Shown: one piece after another, positions 4,296-43,993 of the stretch
Numbering within the stretch: the first letter of the stretch is position 1
Layout: each line of letters opens with the position of its first letter
Source of the DNA: Paraphysomonas bandaiensis
Taxonomy: Eukaryota; Protista; Chrysophyceae
Assembly (NCBI GenBank): GCA_965644295.1
Contig: CBFFRP010000065.1
Coordinates: 1 to 64,000 of the forward strand
Length of the DNA stretch: 64,000 nt
Direction: 5' to 3'
Notes under the pieces: model-generated
Database searches by the model: none
What the model saw: the letters and a program-made list of their open reading frames with translations, nothing else
Told to the model about the DNA's origin: nothing
Translations under genes and position numbers: made by a program

Positions 4296-4669
4296 GAACA
4301 CATTGCACAGCGGTGGTCGATGATGCAGTTTTGAATAAGTGTTTTTGTTATTACGTTTCTATGTCGTATTTGTATGAATAATGTGGCAGTGATGTATTAT
4401 TTATGGTGGTGCGTGAAGAAATCACACGCACAAATTACCCTATCGTTAATAATTTCGAACAAGTTTTGTTAGAAAATTCGTTTTTTGAAATTCCGCCCTT
4501 TTCTCTCTACGTGTTAAAATTGTAATTTACCGTGAGACACCTTAATACTGCATCATACACTGAATTCATTTTTATAACACCTAAATAATCACTGAGTCAT
4601 TGCTGAATAGGAATACTCATTTCACAGTTCTAAGGTAGAACCTAATACTAAGTTCTAAGCACTACACAT

Positions 4670-4931
4670 TATTAGGATTCAGCTTAATACATGATTGTAT
4701 CTGTGAGTTATAATGTTCAATGAAATATACCATGAACTGAATTAGAGAGAGTATCTGTCGAAGATACGTGATCGTCATCATAACGTCGTCATTATCAGTT
4801 ACACTTCTAACTATTCCGTTGTGCATGATAGTACGTTCTATATTGTTATTCATAATTTTCACTCTATCGTGTTCATTACTTACACTCTAATAATCACAAC
4901 ATTGTTTTACTAATAAGCTTAAATCTTATTT
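4670..4931 (+). repeat. 5' LTR (262 bp; TATTAGG...CTTATTT)
   Basis: Identical by eye to 10158-10419. Confidence 0.97.
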
Positions 4932-4941
4932 TGGTAGCGAG
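4932..4941 (+). promoter_or_regulatory. Primer binding site TGGTAGCGAG, probably initiator tRNA-Met
   Basis: TGG start directly after the LTR; TGGTAGC is complementary to the GCUACCA 3' end typical of initiator Met tRNAs. Confidence 0.75.
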
Positions 4942-7900
4942 ATGTCAGTTAAAGTTACAAGTTACGACTCAACCGACTCGGATTCAACAACCGAAAAACA
5001 GAAAGACTCAATGCCAAAGTTCGACGCGAAGAACTTCTCCAAGTGGCAGAAGAAGTGCCGTGCATGGTTTTACAGAAAGCCCAAGATCGTTTATACCCTA
5101 CAAAACGATCATCCAACTGAACCTGAAGAAGGAGAGATTTCAGATGACGAAGATTACCAATATCGACTCGACCAGTATCACGAAACGAAACGATATTATG
5201 ATGAAGGTAATAACTACCTATGGTCTGTCATTTCGAGCGCTGTCATTGGTCAGGATGAAGAGGCCGAAGGGATTTTGGAAAACGTCCCCGATGGAGACGG
5301 AAAAACCGCCTGGACCGATTTGCTAGCCCACTTCAAGGAAAAAACGACAAATGACGTAATCACCGACCTGATTGGTCAATTTCAGAGCCTAAAAATCAAA
5401 AAAGGTCAGTCAATAATCAATTTTCTTGACGCTATCGAAAAGCTCAAAAACAAGCTTATCAATTATGGTCATCGGATCAACGACCAAGACTTAATATCCC
5501 GAATACGACAGGGAATTGTTTCAGAAGATAACATGGTTTACCGAGAATTGGCAATTAATCTGCAGCTACATCCAATTGATGATTATAAAGTATTGATTCG
5601 CAGACTTCGCGGATTAGGAAGCTCGTCTGTTGGAACGCTCCTATCATCCAACAATGAAGACACAAAAACTGACAGTAGTCACCTCGCAACATCAAAACCC
5701 CCACTTTCCCGCAGCAAAGTCAATTTTAAGCGAAAAAGAGGGACATCTTCCAAATATCGCTCCAATAAACAGAAACATGATAAGAGAACCGATAAAGACA
5801 TTAAGTGCTTCAGATGCGGAGGAAAGGGGCACATTGCATCGGAATGCAAGCACTCCTGGGAGAAGATTCAAGAGATGAAAAGCTCCTCCGACAACAAGTC
5901 ATCAACAAGAGGAAAACCGAAATTCAAGAGAGTGAAATTCCAGACTCAGAGTAACGAATATTTCCACGACCACTCTGATCAACTTGCAAATTATGAAGAC
6001 AGTGGTCCATCGTCAGACTATCAAAAAGGACGAGATTACGGAGGAGTTGCTTACACACCGAGCGATGAATCACACTTCGTTAGTGATCAAAAGGCAGGAA
6101 TGGGATCTCTTGACTCGGGGTGCACAGTATCAATTACATCAGAAGCAAGCTACCTTACGGACTACACTGATTGCCTCACCGAGATTCAAACAGCCAAATC
6201 AGGGTCTACAATGATATCCTCAGGTCATGGAAGACTTGGAATCATCCCCAAGTGCAAACACGTGGACCAAGCGTCTAGGACCCTCATTTCTATTAGCCAA
6301 CTGGATGACCTCGGACATGAAATCATATTCAGAAACCAGTCAGTGGAAATATTTAAAGACGGCATATTGCTATCGAAAGGCCAGCGCGTTGGAGGCCTAT
6401 ACGAAATTCCACTATCAGACCTCGGTATTCCCACTGATGAATCTCACCTCGCATCAACTGCCTCAGGTCAACCCGCACTGTTAGCACATAAGAGACTAGC
6501 ACATGCATCACTTGGACTCATACAGAAGGCAATAAAATCACGTCTAATAACTGGTGTCAAGATGACAAAAGAGGAGATGAGTGTTGCCTCTCTACCTGGC
6601 GGTTTATGCGATGGATGTGCGACTGGGAAATCACATAGACGAAAGCACAGGAATGCCACCCGCCAAATGTTGTTGAAAAGAATGAGAAGGGCAAAGGAGC
6701 TGGGGGAGCTCATAGTAGCCGATTTCTCAGGACCACATACACCCGATGCAATTATTACCGGAAATCGATATGTACTTGGGATCGCCGATGTAGCATCAAG
6801 GTACCAGTGGGACTCCTACGGAACAACGAGAGATGAAAACTTCGTTATCCAATCCATTCAGAAAGTCGTCACGTATCTACGCAGTAGGGGTAAACGACTA
6901 CAACATTACCATGCCGATGGAGGGAAGGAACTAGTCTCACGAAAAGTATTGGAATATCTCCAATACATTGGAGCAACATGGACTTTTAACGCTCCCTATA
7001 CTCCCGAGGACAACCCATTTCAAGAGCGACCATGGAGAACCATCAAAGAACGAGCACTTAGTAGCTTGATGGATTCAGGTCTTCCAACGAATTTCTGGGA
7101 ACAAGCCATGAAGACATCCACACACATGAAGAACAGGCTACCTTGCAAAACTGCTAAAGGATTCATGTCCCCACTCCAATTCATCGAAAACGAAATACCA
7201 GACTTGAGTTATGCCAGAATATGGGGATGTAAATGCTTTGTGAATATCGATTCCAGTCTCCGAAAGAACAACTGGGACAGACATAGCTGGCCTGGGTATT
7301 TTATGGGCTATCGAGAGGATGGTCCTGGATATATAGTCTTTGTTCCCGCATTAAGAGACTTTGTTATATCAGGACATGTATTTTTCAACGAATGTGTTCC
7401 ACCAGCAGATAAGAGATACTTTAAGGAGATAAATGAGATATTCAGAGAGAATGAGACCACCAGGACAGTAGAAAGTTTCAAATATCTCATAGGTCTAGCT
7501 CATGTAGATCCAGACGATGGATTAACATATGTAACGACTCAAATAAAGCTCAGAAAAGGATTAATCTCAGCGTATCGTGGTCTAGTGGACGACAGCGGTG
7601 ACACTACACGAATCATCCAGCTCGACGACCCCATTCATGCTGCAGACGTCGAAAAGTACACTGAAGAATACATAGAACTCAAAGCAGTTGGTCTCAAATG
7701 TATTACGTCTCGATCGAAAACCCCAATACATAAATCCAGCAAATCAGATCAAAACCCCGATACAGTTATTGGATCTCCAGCGCCAGCCGCTACTTCCAGG
7801 GGGAGTGGCGAGAATCTCAGACATCATGATGCCGCGCAGGAGAGAATCAGCAGCCATCGGTGTGAACCTACCCACTCCGATGCAAAGATAGCGAAGACTC

Positions 7901-9957
7901 GCCCTCCGAAACAATTCAATGGGAACCTAGTGCCGAATCCGGCACCACACGGTCAAGTGGATCGTGTGCACCAGCGTATGGCCAAACGCGGTAACAAGTC
8001 TGCTGATTCATCGGGAGATTGGGAAAATCAGGGTACACCTGAAGGGCCAAGTAAGGTCCGTGCTACAGCAAAACAACAATTTTTAGCTGGTAGAAAGAGT
8101 GTTCTCCGAAGCAGGAGAATGGCCAGGAAACGGGTAATTGTAAATATACACAAACTAGGTGATGGTGTATATACATGTGATGTAAATGCTAAACATGTAG
8201 TAAATCATATGGCACATGACACACAATGTATATCAAAATTACATACAAACAATATTGATATTGTTATGCATGCTATCAGTAATTGCGATGACATTGACGA
8301 GCTAACCGATACACCAAAGAGTGTTCAAGATGCTATTTCAGGTAAATATAAACAGCAGTGGATCGATGCTATCAATAGAGAAATATCCACTCTTCAGAGG
8401 AAAGGGTGCTGGAGATACACTGCGTTACCACCTGGAGCAAGAGCCATAAAGGGGAAACTCATATTCAAAATAAAAAGAAAACAGAATGATATCAAATTCA
8501 AGGCTCGACTAGTCGCACAGGGTTTTACTCAAATCCAAGGCATCGATTACAATGATACATACAGCCCCGTCGCAAAGGCTACATCACTACGTACAATTAT
8601 TGCCCTTTCGACTATTATGAAACTCAAATTGCACCAAATCGATTTCACAACTGCGTACATCAATGCTGACCTCGAAGAGAACATATACATGTATCCCCCT
8701 CCTGGCATGGACGTCCCTGACGGAAAAGTCCTCAAACTGATGAAAAGCATCTACGGTCTAAAGCAAGCAGGTCTTAACTGGTATAAGTGCTGTACAAATT
8801 TTATGCTAGATATGGGTTTCACCAGACTAATATCTGACCCGTGTATATTCAAAAAGCAGATTAATGGCAGGATTATGCTAATAGCCATGTATGTGGATGA
8901 TATTATTATAGCATCTACATCCGACACTGATATCCAACAATTCAAAGACCATTTATCCAAAAAGTTCGAAATTACGGATCTCGGACTCCTAGACTATTAC
9001 TTGGGCATCTCCATTCATCAAGATTTTGACAAAAATATCACGACTCTCAGTCAGGAGCAGTACGTCAGAAAGTTACTGGACAAATTCAACATGTCTAACA
9101 GTAAACCCATGTCAACACCTATGTTACTGTCTTTCAACTATGATTTACATGAATACAATCATCTTTCAGAGTCAAATCAAAGTTATGTTCAGAATTTCCC
9201 CTACAAGGAGCTCATAGGTTCCCTAATGTATCTAGCTGTATGCACTCGACCGGATATCGCCTATGCAGTCAATACTCTTGCCAGATTTTCTGATATGCCT
9301 AATCTAACTACCTGTAATGCTGCGTTACATGTTCTTAGGTATCTCAAAGGCACTGCTAAGCAAGGATTGATATATTCTGGATCCCACATAACATTGTCAG
9401 GATACTGCGATAGCGATTGGGCACGGTGTCACCTCACTCGACGGTCCACTACAGCCTTTACATTCTTCATAGGTAATTGTCTTATATCATGGCAATCTCG
9501 ATTACAGACAACTGTGGCATTGTCATCTACTGAAGCTGAGTATATGGCTCTATCGTCAGCAGCTCAGGAAGCATTATGGCTACGCTCTTTATTATCAGAA
9601 ATTGGTTTCAAACTTCCATTCTCAACAACTATTTGGTGCGATAATAAAGGGGCAGTCCAATTATGTTACAATCCTACTCATCATCGTCGTACGAAACATA
9701 TTGCGATACGGTATCATTTCATTCGAGAAAATATTGCCGAAAACCAATTGACTGTTGACCATATTCCCACCACGTCAATGTTAGCCGATCTTCTCACGAA
9801 ACCACTAGGAGCAACTAATTTTCTTCAATTGCGAACTACATTGATGGGGGGAGCTGGGTTCGACATCCCATCCAGCAACAACAGGAAGCGATCAACAACC
9901 TCAGAGACACCTAAATCACAATTAACAAGCCACAAGCGACCTAGGTGGCTAGTTTGA
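4942..9957 (+). CDS. Copia Gag-Pol polyprotein, 1671 aa
   Basis: Zinc knuckle CFRCGGKGHIASEC; protease LDSGCT; integrase HKRLAH..CDGC, ADFSG, HADGGKE, NPFQER; RT KARLVAQGFTQ, YVDD; RNase H DSDWA, EAEY, TKHIAIRYHFIRE, ADLLTK; no stops. Confidence 0.98.
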   Translation: MSVKVTSYDSTDSDSTTEKQKDSMPKFDAKNFSKWQKKCRAWFYRKPKIVYTLQNDHPTEPEEGEISDDEDYQYRLDQYHETKRYYDEGNNYLWSVISSAVIGQDEEAEGILENVPDGDGKTAWTDLLAHFKEKTTNDVITDLIGQFQSLKIKKGQSIINFLDAIEKLKNKLINYGHRINDQDLISRIRQGIVSEDNMVYRELAINLQLHPIDDYKVLIRRLRGLGSSSVGTLLSSNNEDTKTDSSHLATSKPPLSRSKVNFKRKRGTSSKYRSNKQKHDKRTDKDIKCFRCGGKGHIASECKHSWEKIQEMKSSSDNKSSTRGKPKFKRVKFQTQSNEYFHDHSDQLANYEDSGPSSDYQKGRDYGGVAYTPSDESHFVSDQKAGMGSLDSGCTVSITSEASYLTDYTDCLTEIQTAKSGSTMISSGHGRLGIIPKCKHVDQASRTLISISQLDDLGHEIIFRNQSVEIFKDGILLSKGQRVGGLYEIPLSDLGIPTDESHLASTASGQPALLAHKRLAHASLGLIQKAIKSRLITGVKMTKEEMSVASLPGGLCDGCATGKSHRRKHRNATRQMLLKRMRRAKELGELIVADFSGPHTPDAIITGNRYVLGIADVASRYQWDSYGTTRDENFVIQSIQKVVTYLRSRGKRLQHYHADGGKELVSRKVLEYLQYIGATWTFNAPYTPEDNPFQERPWRTIKERALSSLMDSGLPTNFWEQAMKTSTHMKNRLPCKTAKGFMSPLQFIENEIPDLSYARIWGCKCFVNIDSSLRKNNWDRHSWPGYFMGYREDGPGYIVFVPALRDFVISGHVFFNECVPPADKRYFKEINEIFRENETTRTVESFKYLIGLAHVDPDDGLTYVTTQIKLRKGLISAYRGLVDDSGDTTRIIQLDDPIHAADVEKYTEEYIELKAVGLKCITSRSKTPIHKSSKSDQNPDTVIGSPAPAATSRGSGENLRHHDAAQERISSHRCEPTHSDAKIAKTRPPKQFNGNLVPNPAPHGQVDRVHQRMAKRGNKSADSSGDWENQGTPEGPSKVRATAKQQFLAGRKSVLRSRRMARKRVIVNIHKLGDGVYTCDVNAKHVVNHMAHDTQCISKLHTNNIDIVMHAISNCDDIDELTDTPKSVQDAISGKYKQQWIDAINREISTLQRKGCWRYTALPPGARAIKGKLIFKIKRKQNDIKFKARLVAQGFTQIQGIDYNDTYSPVAKATSLRTIIALSTIMKLKLHQIDFTTAYINADLEENIYMYPPPGMDVPDGKVLKLMKSIYGLKQAGLNWYKCCTNFMLDMGFTRLISDPCIFKKQINGRIMLIAMYVDDIIIASTSDTDIQQFKDHLSKKFEITDLGLLDYYLGISIHQDFDKNITTLSQEQYVRKLLDKFNMSNSKPMSTPMLLSFNYDLHEYNHLSESNQSYVQNFPYKELIGSLMYLAVCTRPDIAYAVNTLARFSDMPNLTTCNAALHVLRYLKGTAKQGLIYSGSHITLSGYCDSDWARCHLTRRSTTAFTFFIGNCLISWQSRLQTTVALSSTEAEYMALSSAAQEALWLRSLLSEIGFKLPFSTTIWCDNKGAVQLCYNPTHHRRTKHIAIRYHFIRENIAENQLTVDHIPTTSMLADLLTKPLGATNFLQLRTTLMGGAGFDIPSSNNRKRSTTSETPKSQLTSHKRPRWLV

Positions 9958-10148
9958 GTTACACGGAGTTTTTACCATTTTTTTTTACTTTTATTCAATA
10001 CATGATGCTGGACTAGAAGGATGGTCTCACAATATGGCATCTCTGCAGTTCGCTTATTATTGACTAGTGACTGCTACTCTGGTTTTTACTCTCAGTGTGC
10101 ATAAGTTCATATTCTCTCTATTATCTACGGTTCACTGATTATTTCATT

Positions 10149-10157
10149 GAGGGGGCG
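10149..10157 (+). promoter_or_regulatory. Polypurine tract GAGGGGGCG
   Basis: Abuts the first base of the 3' LTR. Confidence 0.85.
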
Positions 10158-10419
10158 TATTAGGATTCAGCTTAATACATGATTGTATCTGTGAGTTATA
10201 ATGTTCAATGAAATATACCATGAACTGAATTAGAGAGAGTATCTGTCGAAGATACGTGATCGTCATCATAACGTCGTCATTATCAGTTACACTTCTAACT
10301 ATTCCGTTGTGCATGATAGTACGTTCTATATTGTTATTCATAATTTTCACTCTATCGTGTTCATTACTTACACTCTAATAATCACAACATTGTTTTACTA
10401 ATAAGCTTAAATCTTATTT
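10158..10419 (+). repeat. 3' LTR (262 bp)
   Basis: Identical to the 5' LTR and followed by TSD CACAT. Confidence 0.97.
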
Positions 10420-10783
10420 CACATCTACAAAGCTGCAAAGAACAAGAAGCATTATTTTCAATTTCGTATTTCAGTTTTAACTTAGAAATAAAGTAAACAC
10501 ACGTAGCTGTATCACGTTATATATCTGATAACTCCTATTTTTTATTCAGTAGCGATATTACCAGCCGAACACGTGTTTGCAGTACTTTAAAATTTCAAAG
10601 TACATTACCTGCCCACTACGCACAGCAACAAAGTTACGATCGTGCCACAATTTAAAATACATAAACAATAAATATTATTATCAATATACTACACAACAAG
10701 CCAATCAAGGTACTAGCAACTACGAACTGAACTATTCACGAATTATTCTATATACTATATACACAATCCCTTCTCACGGTATT

Positions 10784-11647: not shown

Positions 11648-12120
11648 CATACATACATACATACATACATACATACATACATACATACATACATACATAC
11701 ATACATACATACATACATACATACATACATACATACATACATACATACATACATACATACATACATACATACATACATACATACATACATACATACATAC
11801 ATACATACATACATACATACATACATACATACATACATACATACATACATACATACATACATACATACATACATACATACATACATACATACATACATAC
11901 ATACATACATACATACATACATACATACATACATACATACATACATACATACATACATACATACATACATACATACATACATACATACATACATACATAC
12001 ATACATACATACATACATACATACATACATACATACATACATACATACATACATACATACATACATACATACATACATACATACATACATACATACATAC
12101 ATACATACATACATACATAC
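11648..12120. repeat. (CATA)n microsatellite, ~118 uninterrupted units
   Basis: Directly visible. Confidence 0.99.
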
Positions 12121-21001: not shown

Positions 21002-21203
21002 CAATCTTGTATTAAGCTGAATCCTAATACGCCCCCTCAATGAAATAATCAGTGAACTGTAGATAATAGAGAGAATATGAACTATACACACTGAGAGTAA
21101 AAACCAGAGTAGCTGTCACTAGTCAATAAAAACTGCAGAGGTGCCATATTGTGAGGCCATCCTTCTAGTCCAGCATCATGTATTTGTAAGCTGAATCCTA
21201 ATA
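21002..21203 (-). mobile_element. Deleted relic of the same Copia family (LTR start + 3' UTR + PPT + LTR start)
   Basis: Reverse complement matches 9997-10186 with about 6 substitutions and 2 indels, preceded by TATTAGGATTCAGCTTA. Confidence 0.92.
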
Positions 21204-23743: not shown

Positions 23744-24140
23744 CTACAATTAAACTGTGTGGAAGGTATACTACAAGTACAAATCAAATGCTATACAGGA
23801 CTCTTCCCAGTAGGAATGGCATGCCATCAGTAGTTTACATACCCGAAACCCAATCCAGACAGCAGAAGGACGGGTGGCTTAGAGATCTGAAATACGTAGA
23901 TATTATAAGAGCGACCACGATACAAAGAGAATATTAGTTGAGCAAATTGTCAGCAACGGAATGTGTTACAATCAATGACCTAAATCAGCGATCATACCTG
24001 ATCTCGTGCTCGAGCTGATATATCACTTCACCAGTGTGAATGTCAATAATATCTTTGAAGCGGTATTCGTTGTGGTGCAGTATGTCGTCAACAGATCTGT
24101 ACTGAAACTACAATGGCAACAATTAAAACACATGTTCACT
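23744..24140 (-). pseudogene. Duplicated 3' fragment (last two exons, intron and 3' UTR) of the VOC-like gene
   Basis: Near-identical to 28135-28532; retains the intron. Confidence 0.9.
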
Positions 24141-24706
24141 TCACGATCTCTAAGGACTTTATATGAGGAAGTATTGTGATATATTTGTCAAATACTGTTT
24201 GAGTATTCAGATAGATATACTCGTTAGTCTTCTTCTAATTCTCTTTAAAGGACTTAGTTGTGATTCAGCTGATGTATCATCGTGTTGCTGTTGCTCAGGG
24301 CTGCCTGATACTGTTCCTATTTGCTTCTATTATGAAACTAATTCAAGAGATATGGGCTACTCTACTCTTCCTCTTTAATAGGTCAAATATAGCTATCTCT
24401 ATGGATACATAGATATATGGGTATATGATACATATGGATACTGTGCAGAGGTGCCGTATCGCAGTATTGGATCATATATACAGAGTTGGTATACCGGTAT
24501 ATACGGCGGTATACAGATATGTGGAAGGTGTCGTATATATATATACGTAGTGCTGTAGACAGGTACGTAGGTGTATAAGGTGTGTATGTGTAGCTACCAT
24601 ATACGCAGATCTTCTCACTGTACACTGCTATGAGCATATCATACTGCTGCAATCTATACATACATCTATCCATCTATCCTCATCTACTCATCATCTAATC
24701 CCCCTC

Positions 24707-26212
24707 ATGTCCTCTAATGATTACGATATTATTATTATTGGTGCAGGATTATCTGGATTCGTTACAGCATATACTATAAGCAAACTAACTTCAGGACAGT
24801 GTCCCTTCAAGATATGTATCTTAGAGGGCAGAGATCGCTGTGGGGGCAGATTAAAGCCGATGCAATCATTATCCGGTAAATCTATTGATTTAGGTATGTA
24901 TAAGTATAGAATTGCATACAATGAAGTGATGTGATTGATAGGGGGCATGTGGGTGGGCCCTCTACAGACATATATAGGAGATTTATTGCAAGAGCTTGCA
25001 ATCCCTGTATATAAACAGTATCTTGAGGGGGTCAATATACACGATGATAGTCGTCGATTGCATCGATACACTGGAACTATCCCTAATATATCCTTATTCA
25101 GTTTGTTGGATACACACCTCTTGTTGGGTCGAATGGATAAACTTGTGCGGTCGATAGATGTTGAAGATGTATCTTCCACTAAACACGCAAGAGAATACGA
25201 TACCATATCCCTCTATGAATATGGACGAAGACATTGTTGGACGAATCAAGCACAGAGTCTTTTATCTGTAGCTACACGAATGATATTGGGCTATGAAACT
25301 GACCAAGTATCACTGCTGTATTTTTTGTACTATTGCCGAACTGCAGGTGGTACTCGCCCTTTAGTGGATAGTGATGGTGGAGGACAAGACAGTCGCATGA
25401 AGGGTGGTACCGCTGCGTTGTTACATGCGCTAAGAGATTCAATAGAGCGCTCTAACTGCGACTTAACAGTTATCACTGGGCGCCCAGTTGTCTCTGTAGA
25501 TTATTCCTCTCACCCATGTGTAGCTATTTGTTCCGATAACTCCTCTTTTACTTCTAAGCGTATTGTGATGTGTTGTCCTCCCTCTGCTCTATCTCGAATT
25601 TCATTTTCGCCTACTCCCTCACCCTGGAAGCTCTCTTTATGGAAGCGCTCCATTTCAGGCTGTCTCACAAAGGTTGTGGTCGTCTACAACTCTGCCTTCT
25701 GGCGCGAAGCAGGGTTCTCCGGGAGCGCAGTATGTGAACATCCATCTCTTACTCGCCCTTTATCGGGTGTATTTGACTACTGCGATGACTCTGGTGATAA
25801 CCCTGCGCTGTGTGGTTTTATATCTGGCGATGTTGGGGTACGGTTCGCATCTCTTTCGGAGGGCCAGCAACGGACAGCTGTTCTTGGTCACTTAGCACAC
25901 CTCTTCGGATCGATGGCCGAAAATGAGGAGAACCTAATAGAATTTCATATCATGGATTGGCTACATGACCCTGATGGGTCCCGGTTCGGGGGGGGATGCC
26001 CTGTGGATACACCTGGCCTTGGTTATTTCAGAGAACATTCTTCACAGCTACGTACGCCTTTGTTTCGAGATCCTACGGCTTTGGAAGATGTAGTGTTTTT
26101 TGCGGGCACAGAAACTGCATTAAAGTGGGTGGGATATATGGATGGTGCGGTGGAGTCTGGGTTACGGGTGGGAGAAGAGGTTGTTAAATCTCTTGAACGT
26201 GATGAAATGTAG
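24707..26212 (+). CDS. Flavin monoamine oxidase family protein, 2 exons
   Basis: IIGAGLSG, LEGRDRCGGR, DLG/GMWVGPLQ across an intron (~24893-24941), GGGQDSRMKGG, FAGTETALKWVGYMDGAVESG. Confidence 0.95.
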
Positions 26213-26856: not shown

Positions 26857-27295
26857 TGCCCTCAACAGAGTCGGACTCACACCTTGTCGTGGTGTGTTCG
26901 GAGGATGTTGCTCTGCTGTCCACTCATAGCCAAATACTAGTGTGGTACAAGGGACACCAATAAATGTCGCTTGTGTAGACGTCTTTAGGCCTAGACGAAT
27001 AAACAGGCATCAGGAAATGAGCCCACCTCAAGGGCATCCGGTGTATGAGGCTGCCTGCTGAAGTCAAGCAACCGGGCTGTTCACCTCAAGGAATCCAAAA
27101 TCCTGAAGTCAGAAGATGTCAGCTATACCAGCATTCCACATGCTCACTGCACTTTCGAGTGATAGAGCAATAGTGGTTGCACTTTGGTGCTTGCGGTGAC
27201 GCGCAAACAGCTTTCGTAGAGTAAAATAATAGGATATCAGAGTTAAGCGCTGACTCTTAAACCTTAAACGGCTACTGCTAATAATAAGGTATTCA
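26857..27295 (+). repeat. Dispersed repeat family X, copy B (longest)
   Basis: Core at ~27164-27295; upstream block GCCCTCAACAGAGTCGGACTCACACCTT also present at 42853. Confidence 0.75.
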
Positions 27296-28226
27296 CATCT
27301 TCATTGCAAATGTGGAACCTCATCTGGTATCTTGCTTGATTACTGTGCAGAAGAGATCTTTCTTACGGAGCTTACTAGAGCTTGCAATTCGCCAGGTTTG
27401 AATACCCATTTGAAATGAATAGCATGACAGCCTAATTTAAAGCTTTGCCATGTTGAGTTTGCTGTTTGAGCAATTAAAAGCTGTAATTCTAAGGTATTAG
27501 AATTATGACCGTTAGTCAACGAATACAGTAGTGGTTTACACTAACAACATGATAGCTACACTGTAGTAATGAAACTGAATATAATATATTGATTATATAC
27601 AAGATAGAGACGATGTAAGATCGTACGAGAAATGAATGGTTATTGAGATAACATGAAATTGACGAATGAGTAGAGATATTGATTATAATTTTAACAAGAT
27701 TAATAAGTGAATACATGTTCAGTTAACTTAGTACATCATCCAATCGTTTCATAACTTCATAATATTATGCCAATTAAACTAGCATACACACTCAAATTGA
27801 TGGTATTAATATTCCAATTAATTGAAGCCGGTTGTGGTCTATAACTTGCTGTCTACAATTCAATAATTGACAATTAATTGCTATGCAGCCCAGCCAATGA
27901 AATAGGAAATTACATTTTCTTTATACAAGACAACAAATGTTTTACATCGACAACTGGCTGTAGCAAAAAATGTAGAGGGTGGTACTCTGACCTCTGACCA
28001 ATCTTTTATTTAAAAATTCACCGCAAAACTCACTATACAATTCCTCCGTTCTGGTATCAATAGCATTTTCAAAAAAATTGCAATCATACAATAGCAACAT
28101 AGCAACTAAATTTCTAGCTAAGCAATATAATATACTACAATTAAACTGTCTGGAAGGTATACTACAAGTACAAATCAAATGCTATACAGGATTCTTCCCT
28201 GTTAGGAGTGGCATGCCATCAGTAGT

Positions 28227-29757
28227 TTACATACCCGAAACCCAATCCAGACAGCAGAAGGACGGGTGGCTTAGAGATCTGAAATACGTAGATATTATAG
28301 GGGCGACCACGATACAAAGCGAATATTAGTTGAGCAAATTGTCAGCAACGGAATGTGTTACAATCAATGACCTAAATCAGCGATCATACCTGATCTCGTG
28401 CTCGAGCTGATATATCACTTCACCAGTGTGAATGTCAATAATATCTTTGAAGCGGTATTCGTTGTGGTGCAGTATGTCGTCAACAGATCTGTACTGAAAC
28501 TACAATGGCAACAATTAAAACACATGTTCACTGTATACATTTGCGAAAGATAATATACCTGCGGAAAACGTGGGTTCTCCCAATGTAAAGATCTCTCGAC
28601 TAGCCTCTCGTATATGTCCACGAATCTAATCATACAGCACACAGAACAAATATTATGTGTAGATGTAACGGATTACAATACACATTGTACAATTTCCACT
28701 ACATAGCATCTCTACATCACCATGCATTATTAGTTGCCACAGATTATATGTACGTATTTCATTAGCCAAGGTAAAAAGAGTCACGAATCAAGGTTACATT
28801 AGCATACTAATCATATTACAATATTACCTATTCACGTATAGTGCGATATGGTGTCCATCGTAAGATGGAAGAGGGCGACGTGACTCTTTGAATGATATGT
28901 ATTGGTGGTACCCGATGTAGATTGTACATGTATCCAACGGTCCACTCTCTGAGAATTCAGTGGTCGTGGTGGCATTAGCGTATAAAAAATACGAGTAAAA
29001 TTCACATATTCTTTGGGCTGTATGAAGACTGGTATCGAATTCAATGTACCTCATACCTGGAAGGTAGCAAATAGGAATAAGAATATGCGACACGTATATA
29101 CAGTAGTATATACAGCTCGACATACTATACATCCTCATACAATAGAACTCATTCAGCCAAATTTCAGACAGTGCTCTCACCTCTCCCTTCAGTTAAACCT
29201 CCAGGTAAACTGTGTTCCTTATTGGGAGGAAGATGAGCAGCAGGTCCATACCATGTTGCCTCACCAACTTGTTGATGTAATCGAAAACGATTTCCATATG
29301 GACATATTGTTTCAATAATTGGTAGACTATTGTGATCATACGATAGACTATATGCATATTCATAGTCTATTAAATCTTGTTGTATTGACGAGATATTCGG
29401 ATAGTATAATCCAATACATCCACGTATAATTTGAGGATAATCTGATGGAAAATGAAATTGTTGTAATCCAATATTACCCCATACTAAACTATCTGTAATC
29501 CCTCCTGCATTACGTATATTTGATAAGATAATATGAGCACGTGGATCACTCGTTAATTTTAAGATCTTAAAATAGAAATAAGAATACAATGCATTCCATT
29601 TGCCTGTATTGATATTAACATGTTCAAGTAGGACTATGGGTTCACCAGGTTGAACATGTATGATTGGTATAGATGGGTTAGGGTTATATGCGGTAGTATG
29701 GAGGATGATATATGTATGTATGTATAGTATAGTATATAGAAGTGAATAGAGAGACAT
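28227..29757 (-). CDS. Glyoxalase/VOC-superfamily-like protein, 5 exons, with a signal-peptide-like N-terminus
   Basis: Spliced motifs LLEHVNIN, DPR, WGNIGLQQFHFP, PQIIRGCIGL, CPYGNRFR, GMRYIEFD, GHHIALYV, YRFKDIIDIHTGEVIYQLEHEIRSLSHP match, from memory, a bacterial/algal glyoxalase-like family; stop TAA at 28227-28229. Confidence 0.78.
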
Positions 29758-30000: not shown

Positions 30001-30073
30001 GCCTTCATAGCTCAGTTGGCTAGAGCATGCGCTTAGTAAGCGTAAGGTCGAGAGTTCGAGCCTCTCTGAAGGC
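30001..30073 (+). tRNA. trnT: tRNA-Thr (anticodon AGT)
   Basis: Cloverleaf: acceptor GCCTTCA/TGAAGGC, D arm GCTC/GAGC, anticodon arm TGCGC-TTAGTAA-GCGTA, T arm GAGAG-TTCGAGC-CTCTC; downstream poly-T terminator. Confidence 0.98.
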
Positions 30074-30297
30074 TATCCTTTTTTTTATGTAGCTATTCGA
30101 AAACCTTCATTTTATTACTTTTGAATTTATGAAAGCCTGTATATCCAGAGTATCATTCTTCTAAAGTGCAGATATTGTCCACTGTACAGCAGATGATCTG
30201 CTCTGCTCTTGTATGCATATAAGTTTCATTGCATTCTTATCCTCTTATCATAATTCTCCAATCCCTAATTGGTTGTTACTCTTATATTATCATAGAG

Positions 30298-32727: not shown

Positions 32728-33054
32728 GAGGATATATGTGTTTAATTAATTTATTAGAGTGTTTACTCATGTATGAATATATATATATATATATAGTGAT
32801 ATGTAGATGGATGTATTACGTCGTATATTATATATATGGGTTTTATATAGCTGGATACGATGGGCAATAAAACCCTTTAAAGTCATATCAGTATAGAAAA
32901 ACACACTTCTCATAGAAGTATGATTCATTGTAGAGTGTTGAATTATATATATTGACATTCCCACACTTCGACTTCATAAAGAATATCAAGTAATATCTTG
33001 ATATTTTGAATATGTATGCGCGTACGACATATACATAGACAAAAAAAAAGTGAA

Positions 33055-33127
33055 GCCTTCAGAGAGGCTCGAACTCTCGACCTTACGCTTACTAAGCGCA
33101 TGCTCTAGCCAACTGAGCTATGAAGGC
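33055..33127 (-). tRNA. trnT: tRNA-Thr (AGT), copy 2
   Basis: Exact reverse complement of 30001-30073; poly-T downstream. Confidence 0.98.
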
Positions 33128-33211
33128 ATATGATACTTGGGCACAAAATAATACAATATATTATATACGTTTTTTATTTTGAGGAAATTATAGGTAAAAT
33201 AAAAAATGATA

Positions 33212-33284
33212 GCCTTCAGAGAGGCTCGAACTCTCGACCTTACGCTTACTAAGCGCATGCTCTAGCCAACTGAGCTATGAAGGC
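33212..33284 (-). tRNA. trnT: tRNA-Thr (AGT), copy 3
   Basis: Exact reverse complement of 30001-30073; poly-T downstream. Confidence 0.98.
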
Positions 33285-38304: not shown

Positions 38305-38490
38305 ACCAGAACGGAAGTGTTCGCAGCTTGGTGCTTGCGGCGACGAACAAGCAGCTTCCGTTGCGTTACATAGTAGGATATGAGAAGTTGCACTATTTAG
38401 TTACAGGTAAAAGTTTATCTAGCTTGACTAGTTTTCATCTAGCTACATAGCTAGTGACGATTCTTGACGCCTATTGCTAAATAATCAGGT
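38305..38490 (+). repeat. Dispersed repeat family X, copy C (diverged)
   Basis: CTTGGTGCTTGCGGCGACGAACAAGCAGCTTCCGTTGCGTTACATAGTAGGATAT...GCCTATTGCTAAATAATCAGG. Confidence 0.75.
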
Positions 38491-42852: not shown

Positions 42853-43045
42853 GCCCTCAACAAAGTCGGACTCGCACCTTTTCGTAGTGATAAGCACCTT
42901 GCTGCTTGCGGTGACACACAAGCAGTTTTCGTAGCGCTAAATAGTATGCTATCAGAGTTTAGCACTAGTTAGTGAGATTGTTTTGCTAGATTAGTTCTGA
43001 CGCTTACACGCCTATTATTGCTAATAATAAAATCAGGCATTCACT
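42853..43045 (+). repeat. Dispersed repeat family X, copy D
   Basis: Upstream block fused directly to the core (about 290 bp deleted relative to copy B). Confidence 0.8.
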
Positions 43046-43851: not shown

Positions 43852-43993
43852 AGCGTAACTTAGTGATTTCGGTGACGCACAATCAGCTTTCGCAGCGTTA
43901 AATAGTAGGATATCAGAGTTAAGCACTAGTCAGTTAAATTTCAATGCTAAGTTAGTTCTAACTCTTAAGCGCCTTTAGCTAATAATTAGACAT
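43852..43993 (+). repeat. Dispersed repeat family X, copy E
   Basis: CGGTGACGCACAATCAGCTTTCGCAGCGTTAAATAGTAGGATATCAGAGTTAAGCACTAG...GCTAATAATTAGACAT. Confidence 0.8.

Follow-up and report, generated by a model that had tools for sequence, protein, structure and literature searches.

A recently active Ty1/Copia retrotransposon with TA…TT termini in the chrysophyte Paraphysomonas bandaiensis

We analysed a window of 64,000 nucleotides (positions 1 to 64,000 of contig CBFFRP010000065.1, assembly GCA_965644295.1) from the marine heterotrophic chrysophyte Paraphysomonas bandaiensis, in which a preliminary description had pointed to a Copia retrotransposon with unusual ends. Here we describe the termini of this element and its family, their priming sites and 5-bp stagger, and their intactness, multiplicity and transcription. 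We are highly confident that it is an autonomous Ty1/Copia element with true TA…TT ends which has been active very recently, perhaps is so currently, and whose blunt complementary DNA (cDNA) would be joined to the target by its own integrase. TATT is a new end type among the non-TGCA ends of Copia elements, found in a new host group, and does not define a new kind of element.

Structure of the element and termini of its genomic copies

The complete element is 5,750 bp long (4670-10419). Both of its long terminal repeats (LTRs) measure 262 bp and are 100% identical, and not a single further base could be added to the repeat at either edge. The identical LTRs, the intact open reading frame (ORF) and the flanking CACAT pentamers of the preliminary description were all recovered, together with the following features.

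4665..4669, + strand: left target-site duplication CACAT, the same pentamer being present at 10420-10424
4670..4931, + strand: 5' LTR, 262 bp, starting TATTAGG and ending CTTATTT; defined by identity to the 3' LTR and by duplications at 11 insertions
4932..4949, + strand: primer-binding site (PBS), the first 10 nt of which (TGGTAGCGAG) are complementary to the CCA-bearing 3' end of a variant form of this genome's initiator tRNA-Met (tRNA-iMet)
4942..9957, + strand: single gag-protease-integrase-reverse transcriptase-RNase H ORF, 1671 amino acids; domain profile matches
6997..7041, + strand: integrase active-site loop YTPEDNPFQERPWRT, with the catalytic Glu retained
10149..10157, + strand: polypurine tract (PPT) GAGGGGGCG, abutting the 3' LTR in a context common to all copies
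10158..10419, + strand: 3' LTR, 262 bp, identical to the 5' LTR
10420..10424, + strand: right target-site duplication CACAT, matching the left pentamer
21002..21203, - strand: relic of this family, in which 17 nucleotides from the LTR start are joined to the 3' untranslated region, the PPT and the initial 28 nt of the 3' LTR; 94% identity

The polyprotein contains, in this order, Retrotran_gag_2, zf-CCHC, gag_pre-integrs, rve, SH3_retrovirus and RVT_2 (E 5e-67) domains, which is the Copia order, and a DSGC protease motif at residue 391. This domain order, the LTRs with their 5-bp duplication, the PBS and PPT, and a D,D(35)E triad in the integrase all identify a member of the Ty1/Copia group (Pseudoviridae). 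The PPT and the PBS had been said to give the same boundaries independently, and they do: GAGGGGGCG lies immediately 5' of TATTAGG at 10158 and TGGTAGCG begins at 4932, immediately after CTTATTT, so that both abut the LTR without spacer bases. The relic on the minus strand likewise starts with TATTAGG at 21203, as previously noticed; internal sequence has been deleted from this copy, and its TATTAGG start adjoins unrelated DNA. An imperfect terminal inverted repeat of about 18 bp, also reported earlier, is present in a weak form, with 10/18 matches in register and 12/18 when a 1-nt offset is allowed.

To place the ends on more than one insertion, the LTR of the window element (family A) was searched against the same 62.6-Mb assembly. 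The search gave 42 scored matches out of 478 candidates, and the junctions were inspected in 30 of the loci. Eleven independent family A insertions carried 11 different 5-bp duplications around identical ends: CACAT for the window copy; TCCTC, TATAT, CAAGT, GAGAA, AGTTG, AGATG, AAGGC and CTCTC for full-length copies; TCACC for a solo LTR; and CTTTC for a subfamily whose LTR ends in …CTTTATT. The duplications directly abut TATTAGG on one side and the TT-3' end of the LTR on the other (CTTATTT, or CTTTATT in the subfamily), and the same ends were present in all of the approximately 40 family A LTR copies inspected. The base preceding the left end is variable, indicating that the LTR starts exactly at TA, and in most insertions the right end is followed by C, G or A, indicating that the LTR ends exactly in TTT. 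One 5' LTR of the family (L022/L025, G000:C108:229560-230056) is a tandem LTR in which a junction through the motif AAGCTTAA, found near both LTR ends, connects position 253 to position 12.

The same genome contains many intact copies of a sister family (family B, P0143), with 56% protein identity to family A. Its LTRs are 258 bp long (TATTAGGAG…AATCTTATTT) and were flanked by duplications at 6/6 insertions (AAATA, ATACT, AACCC, TAGTG, GATTT and CTTAG). One family B copy (L033, G000:C1:182432-190366) adjoins CCCTAA-like repeats (aaccctaatcctaac) and may be a subtelomeric insertion. The LTRs of families A and B have diverged over about half of their interior and have the first 8 and the last 13-14 nt in common, a conservation which argues for selection on the termini. 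The canonical TG…CA was thus replaced by TA…TT at all 17 of the 17 insertions with duplications, 11 of family A and 6 of family B. This consistency across genomic copies and a solo LTR confirms the proposed TA…TT ends, and their presence in both families makes them a lineage trait, in agreement with the special lineage envisaged in the preliminary description.

As a control, the same procedure was applied to two other families of this genome. Family C (P0027, about 30% identity) gave TGTTGAG…TCTAACA with duplications at 8/8 insertions, and family E gave TGTTGAG…CTGTTA with duplications at three of four copies. Recovery of TG…CA for the former and TG…TA for the latter indicates that TA…TT is not an artefact of the procedure. 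Families C and E belong to the same marine-protist Copia clade as family A, use the same tRNA-iMet primer and likewise make 5-bp duplications; they have LTRs of 293-320 bp and many intact copies. They differ from it in protein sequence (about 30% identity to the window element) and in their integrase loops, NGVSERRNRT in C and NAVSERKFRT in E. Two further families were encountered. Family D (C394, C19, C30, C616 and others) is 74% identical to C and has many near-intact copies, most with one in-frame TGA; a sixth Copia family (C109, C407) also has many near-intact copies, with an open frame of 1551 amino acids.

Priming sites, predicted cDNA ends and activity

Search patterns that assumed a standard T-loop, or the PBS of the window copy itself, found no tRNA, whereas an anticodon-arm pattern located the initiator tRNA-Met genes. 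The main tRNA-iMet gene ends in …AACTACCATCCGCTA, the complement of which after CCA addition, TGGTAGCGGATGGTAGTT, is exactly the 18-nt PBS that certain members of families A, B and C carry. A variant tRNA-iMet gene gives TGGTAGCGAGTGATAGTT, which is the PBS of family E and matches the window copy over its first 10 nt. Across family A copies, the complementarity of the PBS to tRNA-iMet extends over 10-18 nt. Priming is not of the hemivirus type known from copia and Ty5, in which a half-tRNA primer pairs with the PBS through an internal part of tRNA-iMet, since the PBS starts with TGG and matches the 3' end of the tRNA including CCA. The PBS is dimorphic within families A (L002, L010, L022), B (L035) and C (L055, L056), some copies having the family's own imperfect version and others the exact 18-nt complement of tRNA-iMet. 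Two PBS versions per family fit the inheritance of either the template PBS or a tRNA-derived copy of it.

These positions suggest how the ends may be produced. The 3' end of initiator tRNA-Met, annealed right after U5, would prime minus-strand synthesis; as it abuts U5, the first base made by reverse transcriptase should lie opposite the last T of CTTATTT. Plus-strand synthesis would start right after the PPT, at the T of TATTAGG. Given that there are no spacer bases at the inner LTR edges, the cDNA should be blunt without trimming, as in Ty1, so that the finished molecule, 5'-TATTAGG…CTTATTT-3', would have no bases to remove. The element's own DDE integrase would then insert it with a 5-bp stagger, joining TA-3' at the left end (bottom strand) and TT-3' at the right end in place of the usual CA-3'.

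Several observations bear on activity. At least 17 family A and at least 12 family B intact open frames were counted among the scored matches, and several family A LTR pairs are 100% identical. MMETSP transcripts 97% identical to the element were found (P0003), a large part of the element is covered at 99% identity or more by contigs of marine metatranscriptomes prepared by poly(A) selection, and the 90% cluster of the polyprotein includes a member from MMETSP1103, assigned to the heterotrophic chrysophyte Paraphysomonas (taxon 36769). Taken together, the identical LTR pairs, intact frames and transcripts indicate that the element has been recently active, as had been proposed, and it is probably active at present. 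In Logan contigs we saw neither a joint skipping 4670-10424, as expected for an empty site, nor an LTR-LTR (2-LTR) junction, but such contigs cannot show absence.

The integrase loop and alternative explanations of the termini

The integrase retains its DDE triad (D594, D659 and E695), which lines up with the invariant alignment columns as well as with the Ty1, bovine immunodeficiency virus (BIV) and prototype foamy virus (PFV) integrases. The loop at the catalytic Glu reads NPFQERPWRT against a Copia consensus of NGVAERxNRT, with Pro, Phe, Gln and Trp standing for the consensus Gly, Val, Ala and Asn. The pattern NG[VI][AS]ERxNR[TS] is present in nearly all of the approximately 100 Copia polyproteins listed. 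The best match among solved structures is the Ty1 integrase (PDB 7z0h), the loop of which is GVAERLNRT, and HMMER alignment to solved integrases places the loop on QGVVERAHR of BIV and GSKVERKNS of PFV. Trp698 aligns with N224 of PFV and N155 of HIV-1 (human immunodeficiency virus type 1), and Pro692 with G149 of HIV-1. In retroviral intasomes, this loop is positioned against the bases at the 3' terminus of the viral DNA. At physiological metal concentrations, the Ty1 integrase depends on a CA-3' end (PMC8487063). From the conserved ends of families A and B, the rewritten loop and this need of the Ty1 enzyme for CA, an altered end recognition, as suggested in the preliminary description, appears plausible, and we infer that the integrase may have adapted to TA/TT ends via the changes beside its catalytic Glu.

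We compared the residue at the N155 position with the ends of related families. In a phylogenetic tree, the marine-protist families form one clade (Shimodaira-Hasegawa-like approximate likelihood ratio test, SH-aLRT, 100) that is separate from the types found in plants and animals. For each family the residue, the ends and the evidence for the ends are as follows.

Families A and B: Trp; TA…TT; duplications
Family C: Asn; TG…CA; duplications
P0017: Asn; TG…CA; PPT/PBS
Family E: Phe; TG…TA; duplications
P0033: Phe; TA…CA; PPT/PBS
P0004: Phe; TG…TA, one PBS mismatch; PPT/PBS
P0008: Phe; TA…TA, one PBS mismatch; PPT/PBS
P0007: Phe; TA…TT; PPT/PBS
P0021: Phe; …TT right end, left end unclear; PPT/PBS
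P0023: Phe; TG…CA; PPT/PBS

A Vitis control (L074) showed TG…CA with the consensus loop. A Mikania contig (L073) had the loop KHRH; this locus is nested and rearranged, and the integrase of its second element is degraded. A simple rule, in which Asn goes with CA ends and Phe or Trp with non-CA ends, fits A, B, C, E, P0017, P0033, P0007, P0004, P0008 and P0021 and is broken by P0023. Families lacking the Asn thus tend to have non-CA ends, without the residue dictating which ends occur. With a small sample of related families and few independent changes on the tree, we regard the covariation of loop and ends as a lead and not as a result. That the N155-aligned residue (Asn in canonical elements, Phe or Trp here) and its neighbours set which 3' dinucleotide is joined is accordingly a tentative proposal, and on balance a doubtful one. 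If it were true, the four co-resident families (CA/CA, CA/TA and TA/TT) would constitute a natural allelic series for an integrase-to-end code.

Three points weigh against an integrase adapted to blunt TA…TT ends. P0023 combines a Phe loop with TG…CA (from PPT/PBS), which leaves the link between loop and ends loose. The ends of the relatives on metagenome contigs were placed by PPT and PBS alone, without duplications. Finally, one T templated by a retained tRNA base may have gone unseen, since the PBS also starts with T. The first of these points would be accommodated if the integrases of the clade tolerated almost any A/T-ending terminus, TA…TT being the outcome of neutral drift and the loop changes being unrelated to it. 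Such relaxed recognition would also account for the variety of ends among the relatives (TG…CA, TG…TA, TA…CA, TA…TA and TA…TT), and the Ty1 integrase is known to lose its specificity at high Mn (PMC8487063). However, families A and B share their terminal 8 and 13-14 nt although about half of the remaining LTR has diverged, and the inspected LTR copies of family A are uniform in their ends, both of which argue for selection. We consider relaxed recognition possible, but on the unlikely side.

The retained tRNA base leads to another explanation, in which the cDNA carries one or more extra bases at its right end, for example a T copied from a retained 3' ribo-A of the tRNA as in HIV-1, which the integrase trims before joining. 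A cDNA ending in four T would leave no trace in integrated copies, the first base of the PBS being also T, and the terminal inverted repeat is better with the 1-nt offset (12/18 instead of 10/18). Against trimming, the LTR runs exactly to the PBS and PPT with no spacer, as in Ty1, which does not process its ends, and the joined base would still be T even after trimming. We judge processed ends to be improbable. As for mis-assigned boundaries or an assembly artefact, with true ends of TG…CA and a duplication arising by chance, the 17 insertions of families A and B show the same ends next to different 5-bp duplications, the PBS and PPT agree with these ends, no TG or CA lies within reach of either end, identical junctions were found in independent run contigs, and TG…CA was duly recovered for family C. 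An error of this sort is so improbable that it can practically be set aside.

Comparison with known Copia elements and other features of the window

The preliminary description had assumed that the known variants of Copia ends still end in A and that the present element was exceptional in this respect. This was incorrect. For plants, the LTR_retriever study described seven types of non-TGCA motif, TACT among them, and it cites Gypsy elements with TG..CT ends (10.1101/137141). In lotus, Copia elements with TGCT (6,203 copies), TGGT, TACT and TGTT were reported, obeying position rules (first T; second G or A; third C, G or T; fourth A or T) and having short LTRs of about 316 bp (PMC9804982). Other plant examples are Tos17 (TG..GA), AtRE1 (TA..TA) and Hopscotch/TARE1 (TA..CA), the published tetrads being TGCT, TGGA, TGTA, TGGT, TACA, TACT, TATA, TGTT and TCCA (10.1101/137141; PMC9804982). 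Ends with a 3'-terminal T are thus documented in plant Copia; TATT is outside the seven or nine published motif types but obeys all four position rules and the short-LTR pattern. A full-text literature search found no paper pairing non-TGCA with TATT, and a literature search found none on transposable elements of Paraphysomonas.

The plant non-TGCA elements share with the window element the Copia superfamily, a compact structure, the 5-bp duplication, the position rules and the occurrence of a 3'-terminal T, and LTRs are short in both (262 bp here, a mean of 272-316 bp in plants). The differences are the end motif, TA..TT being unlike TGCA at three of the four positions; the host, here a heterotrophic chrysophyte; and the phylogenetic placement of the element in a separate marine-protist clade. 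With Saccharomyces Ty1 (Pseudovirus), it has in common a PBS for the 3' end of tRNA-iMet abutting U5, a PPT abutting U3, the 5-bp duplication and, as expected here, a blunt cDNA without 3' processing. Ty1 differs in its TG…CA ends and the CA-3' requirement of its integrase (PMC8487063), and has a gag/pol frameshift and the loop GVAERLNRT, where the window element has one ORF and the loop PFQERPWRT.

Elsewhere in the window, a perfect microsatellite, (CATA)n with about 118 units (11648-12120), lies 1.2 kb downstream of the element. A pair of direct repeats at 23744-24141 and 28135-28532 (398 bp, 98% identical, 4.39 kb apart) was considered as an LTR element and rejected; it has no TG..CA ends, brackets an ORF with a flavin amine-oxidase domain (24935-26212) and looks like a local duplication. 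A 73-nt dispersed repeat occurs at 27179-27251, 38323-38395, 42894-42966 and 43855-43927 with 70-82% identity, and one copy of this repeat, on contig C413, harbours an inserted family A subfamily element (L029/L030). Three tRNA-Thr(AGT) genes are found at 30001-30074 (+), 33054-33127 (-) and 33211-33284 (-), two of them in a 157-bp tandem.

The default settings of LTR_FINDER and LTR_retriever admit only TG…CA or a predefined set of non-TGCA motifs, and would drop TATT. The element would therefore be expected to escape motif-filtered LTR finders, as the preliminary description had foreseen, and such filters would pass over two families that rank among the most active of this genome, and probably further protist families. 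Plants are not alone in having non-canonical Copia ends, and the position rules published for them also apply in a distant eukaryote. A single genome carries intact Copia elements with CA/CA, CA/TA and TA/TT ends together with graded changes beside the catalytic Glu, and these co-resident families offer a tractable system for studying how DDE integrases read the terminal dinucleotide.

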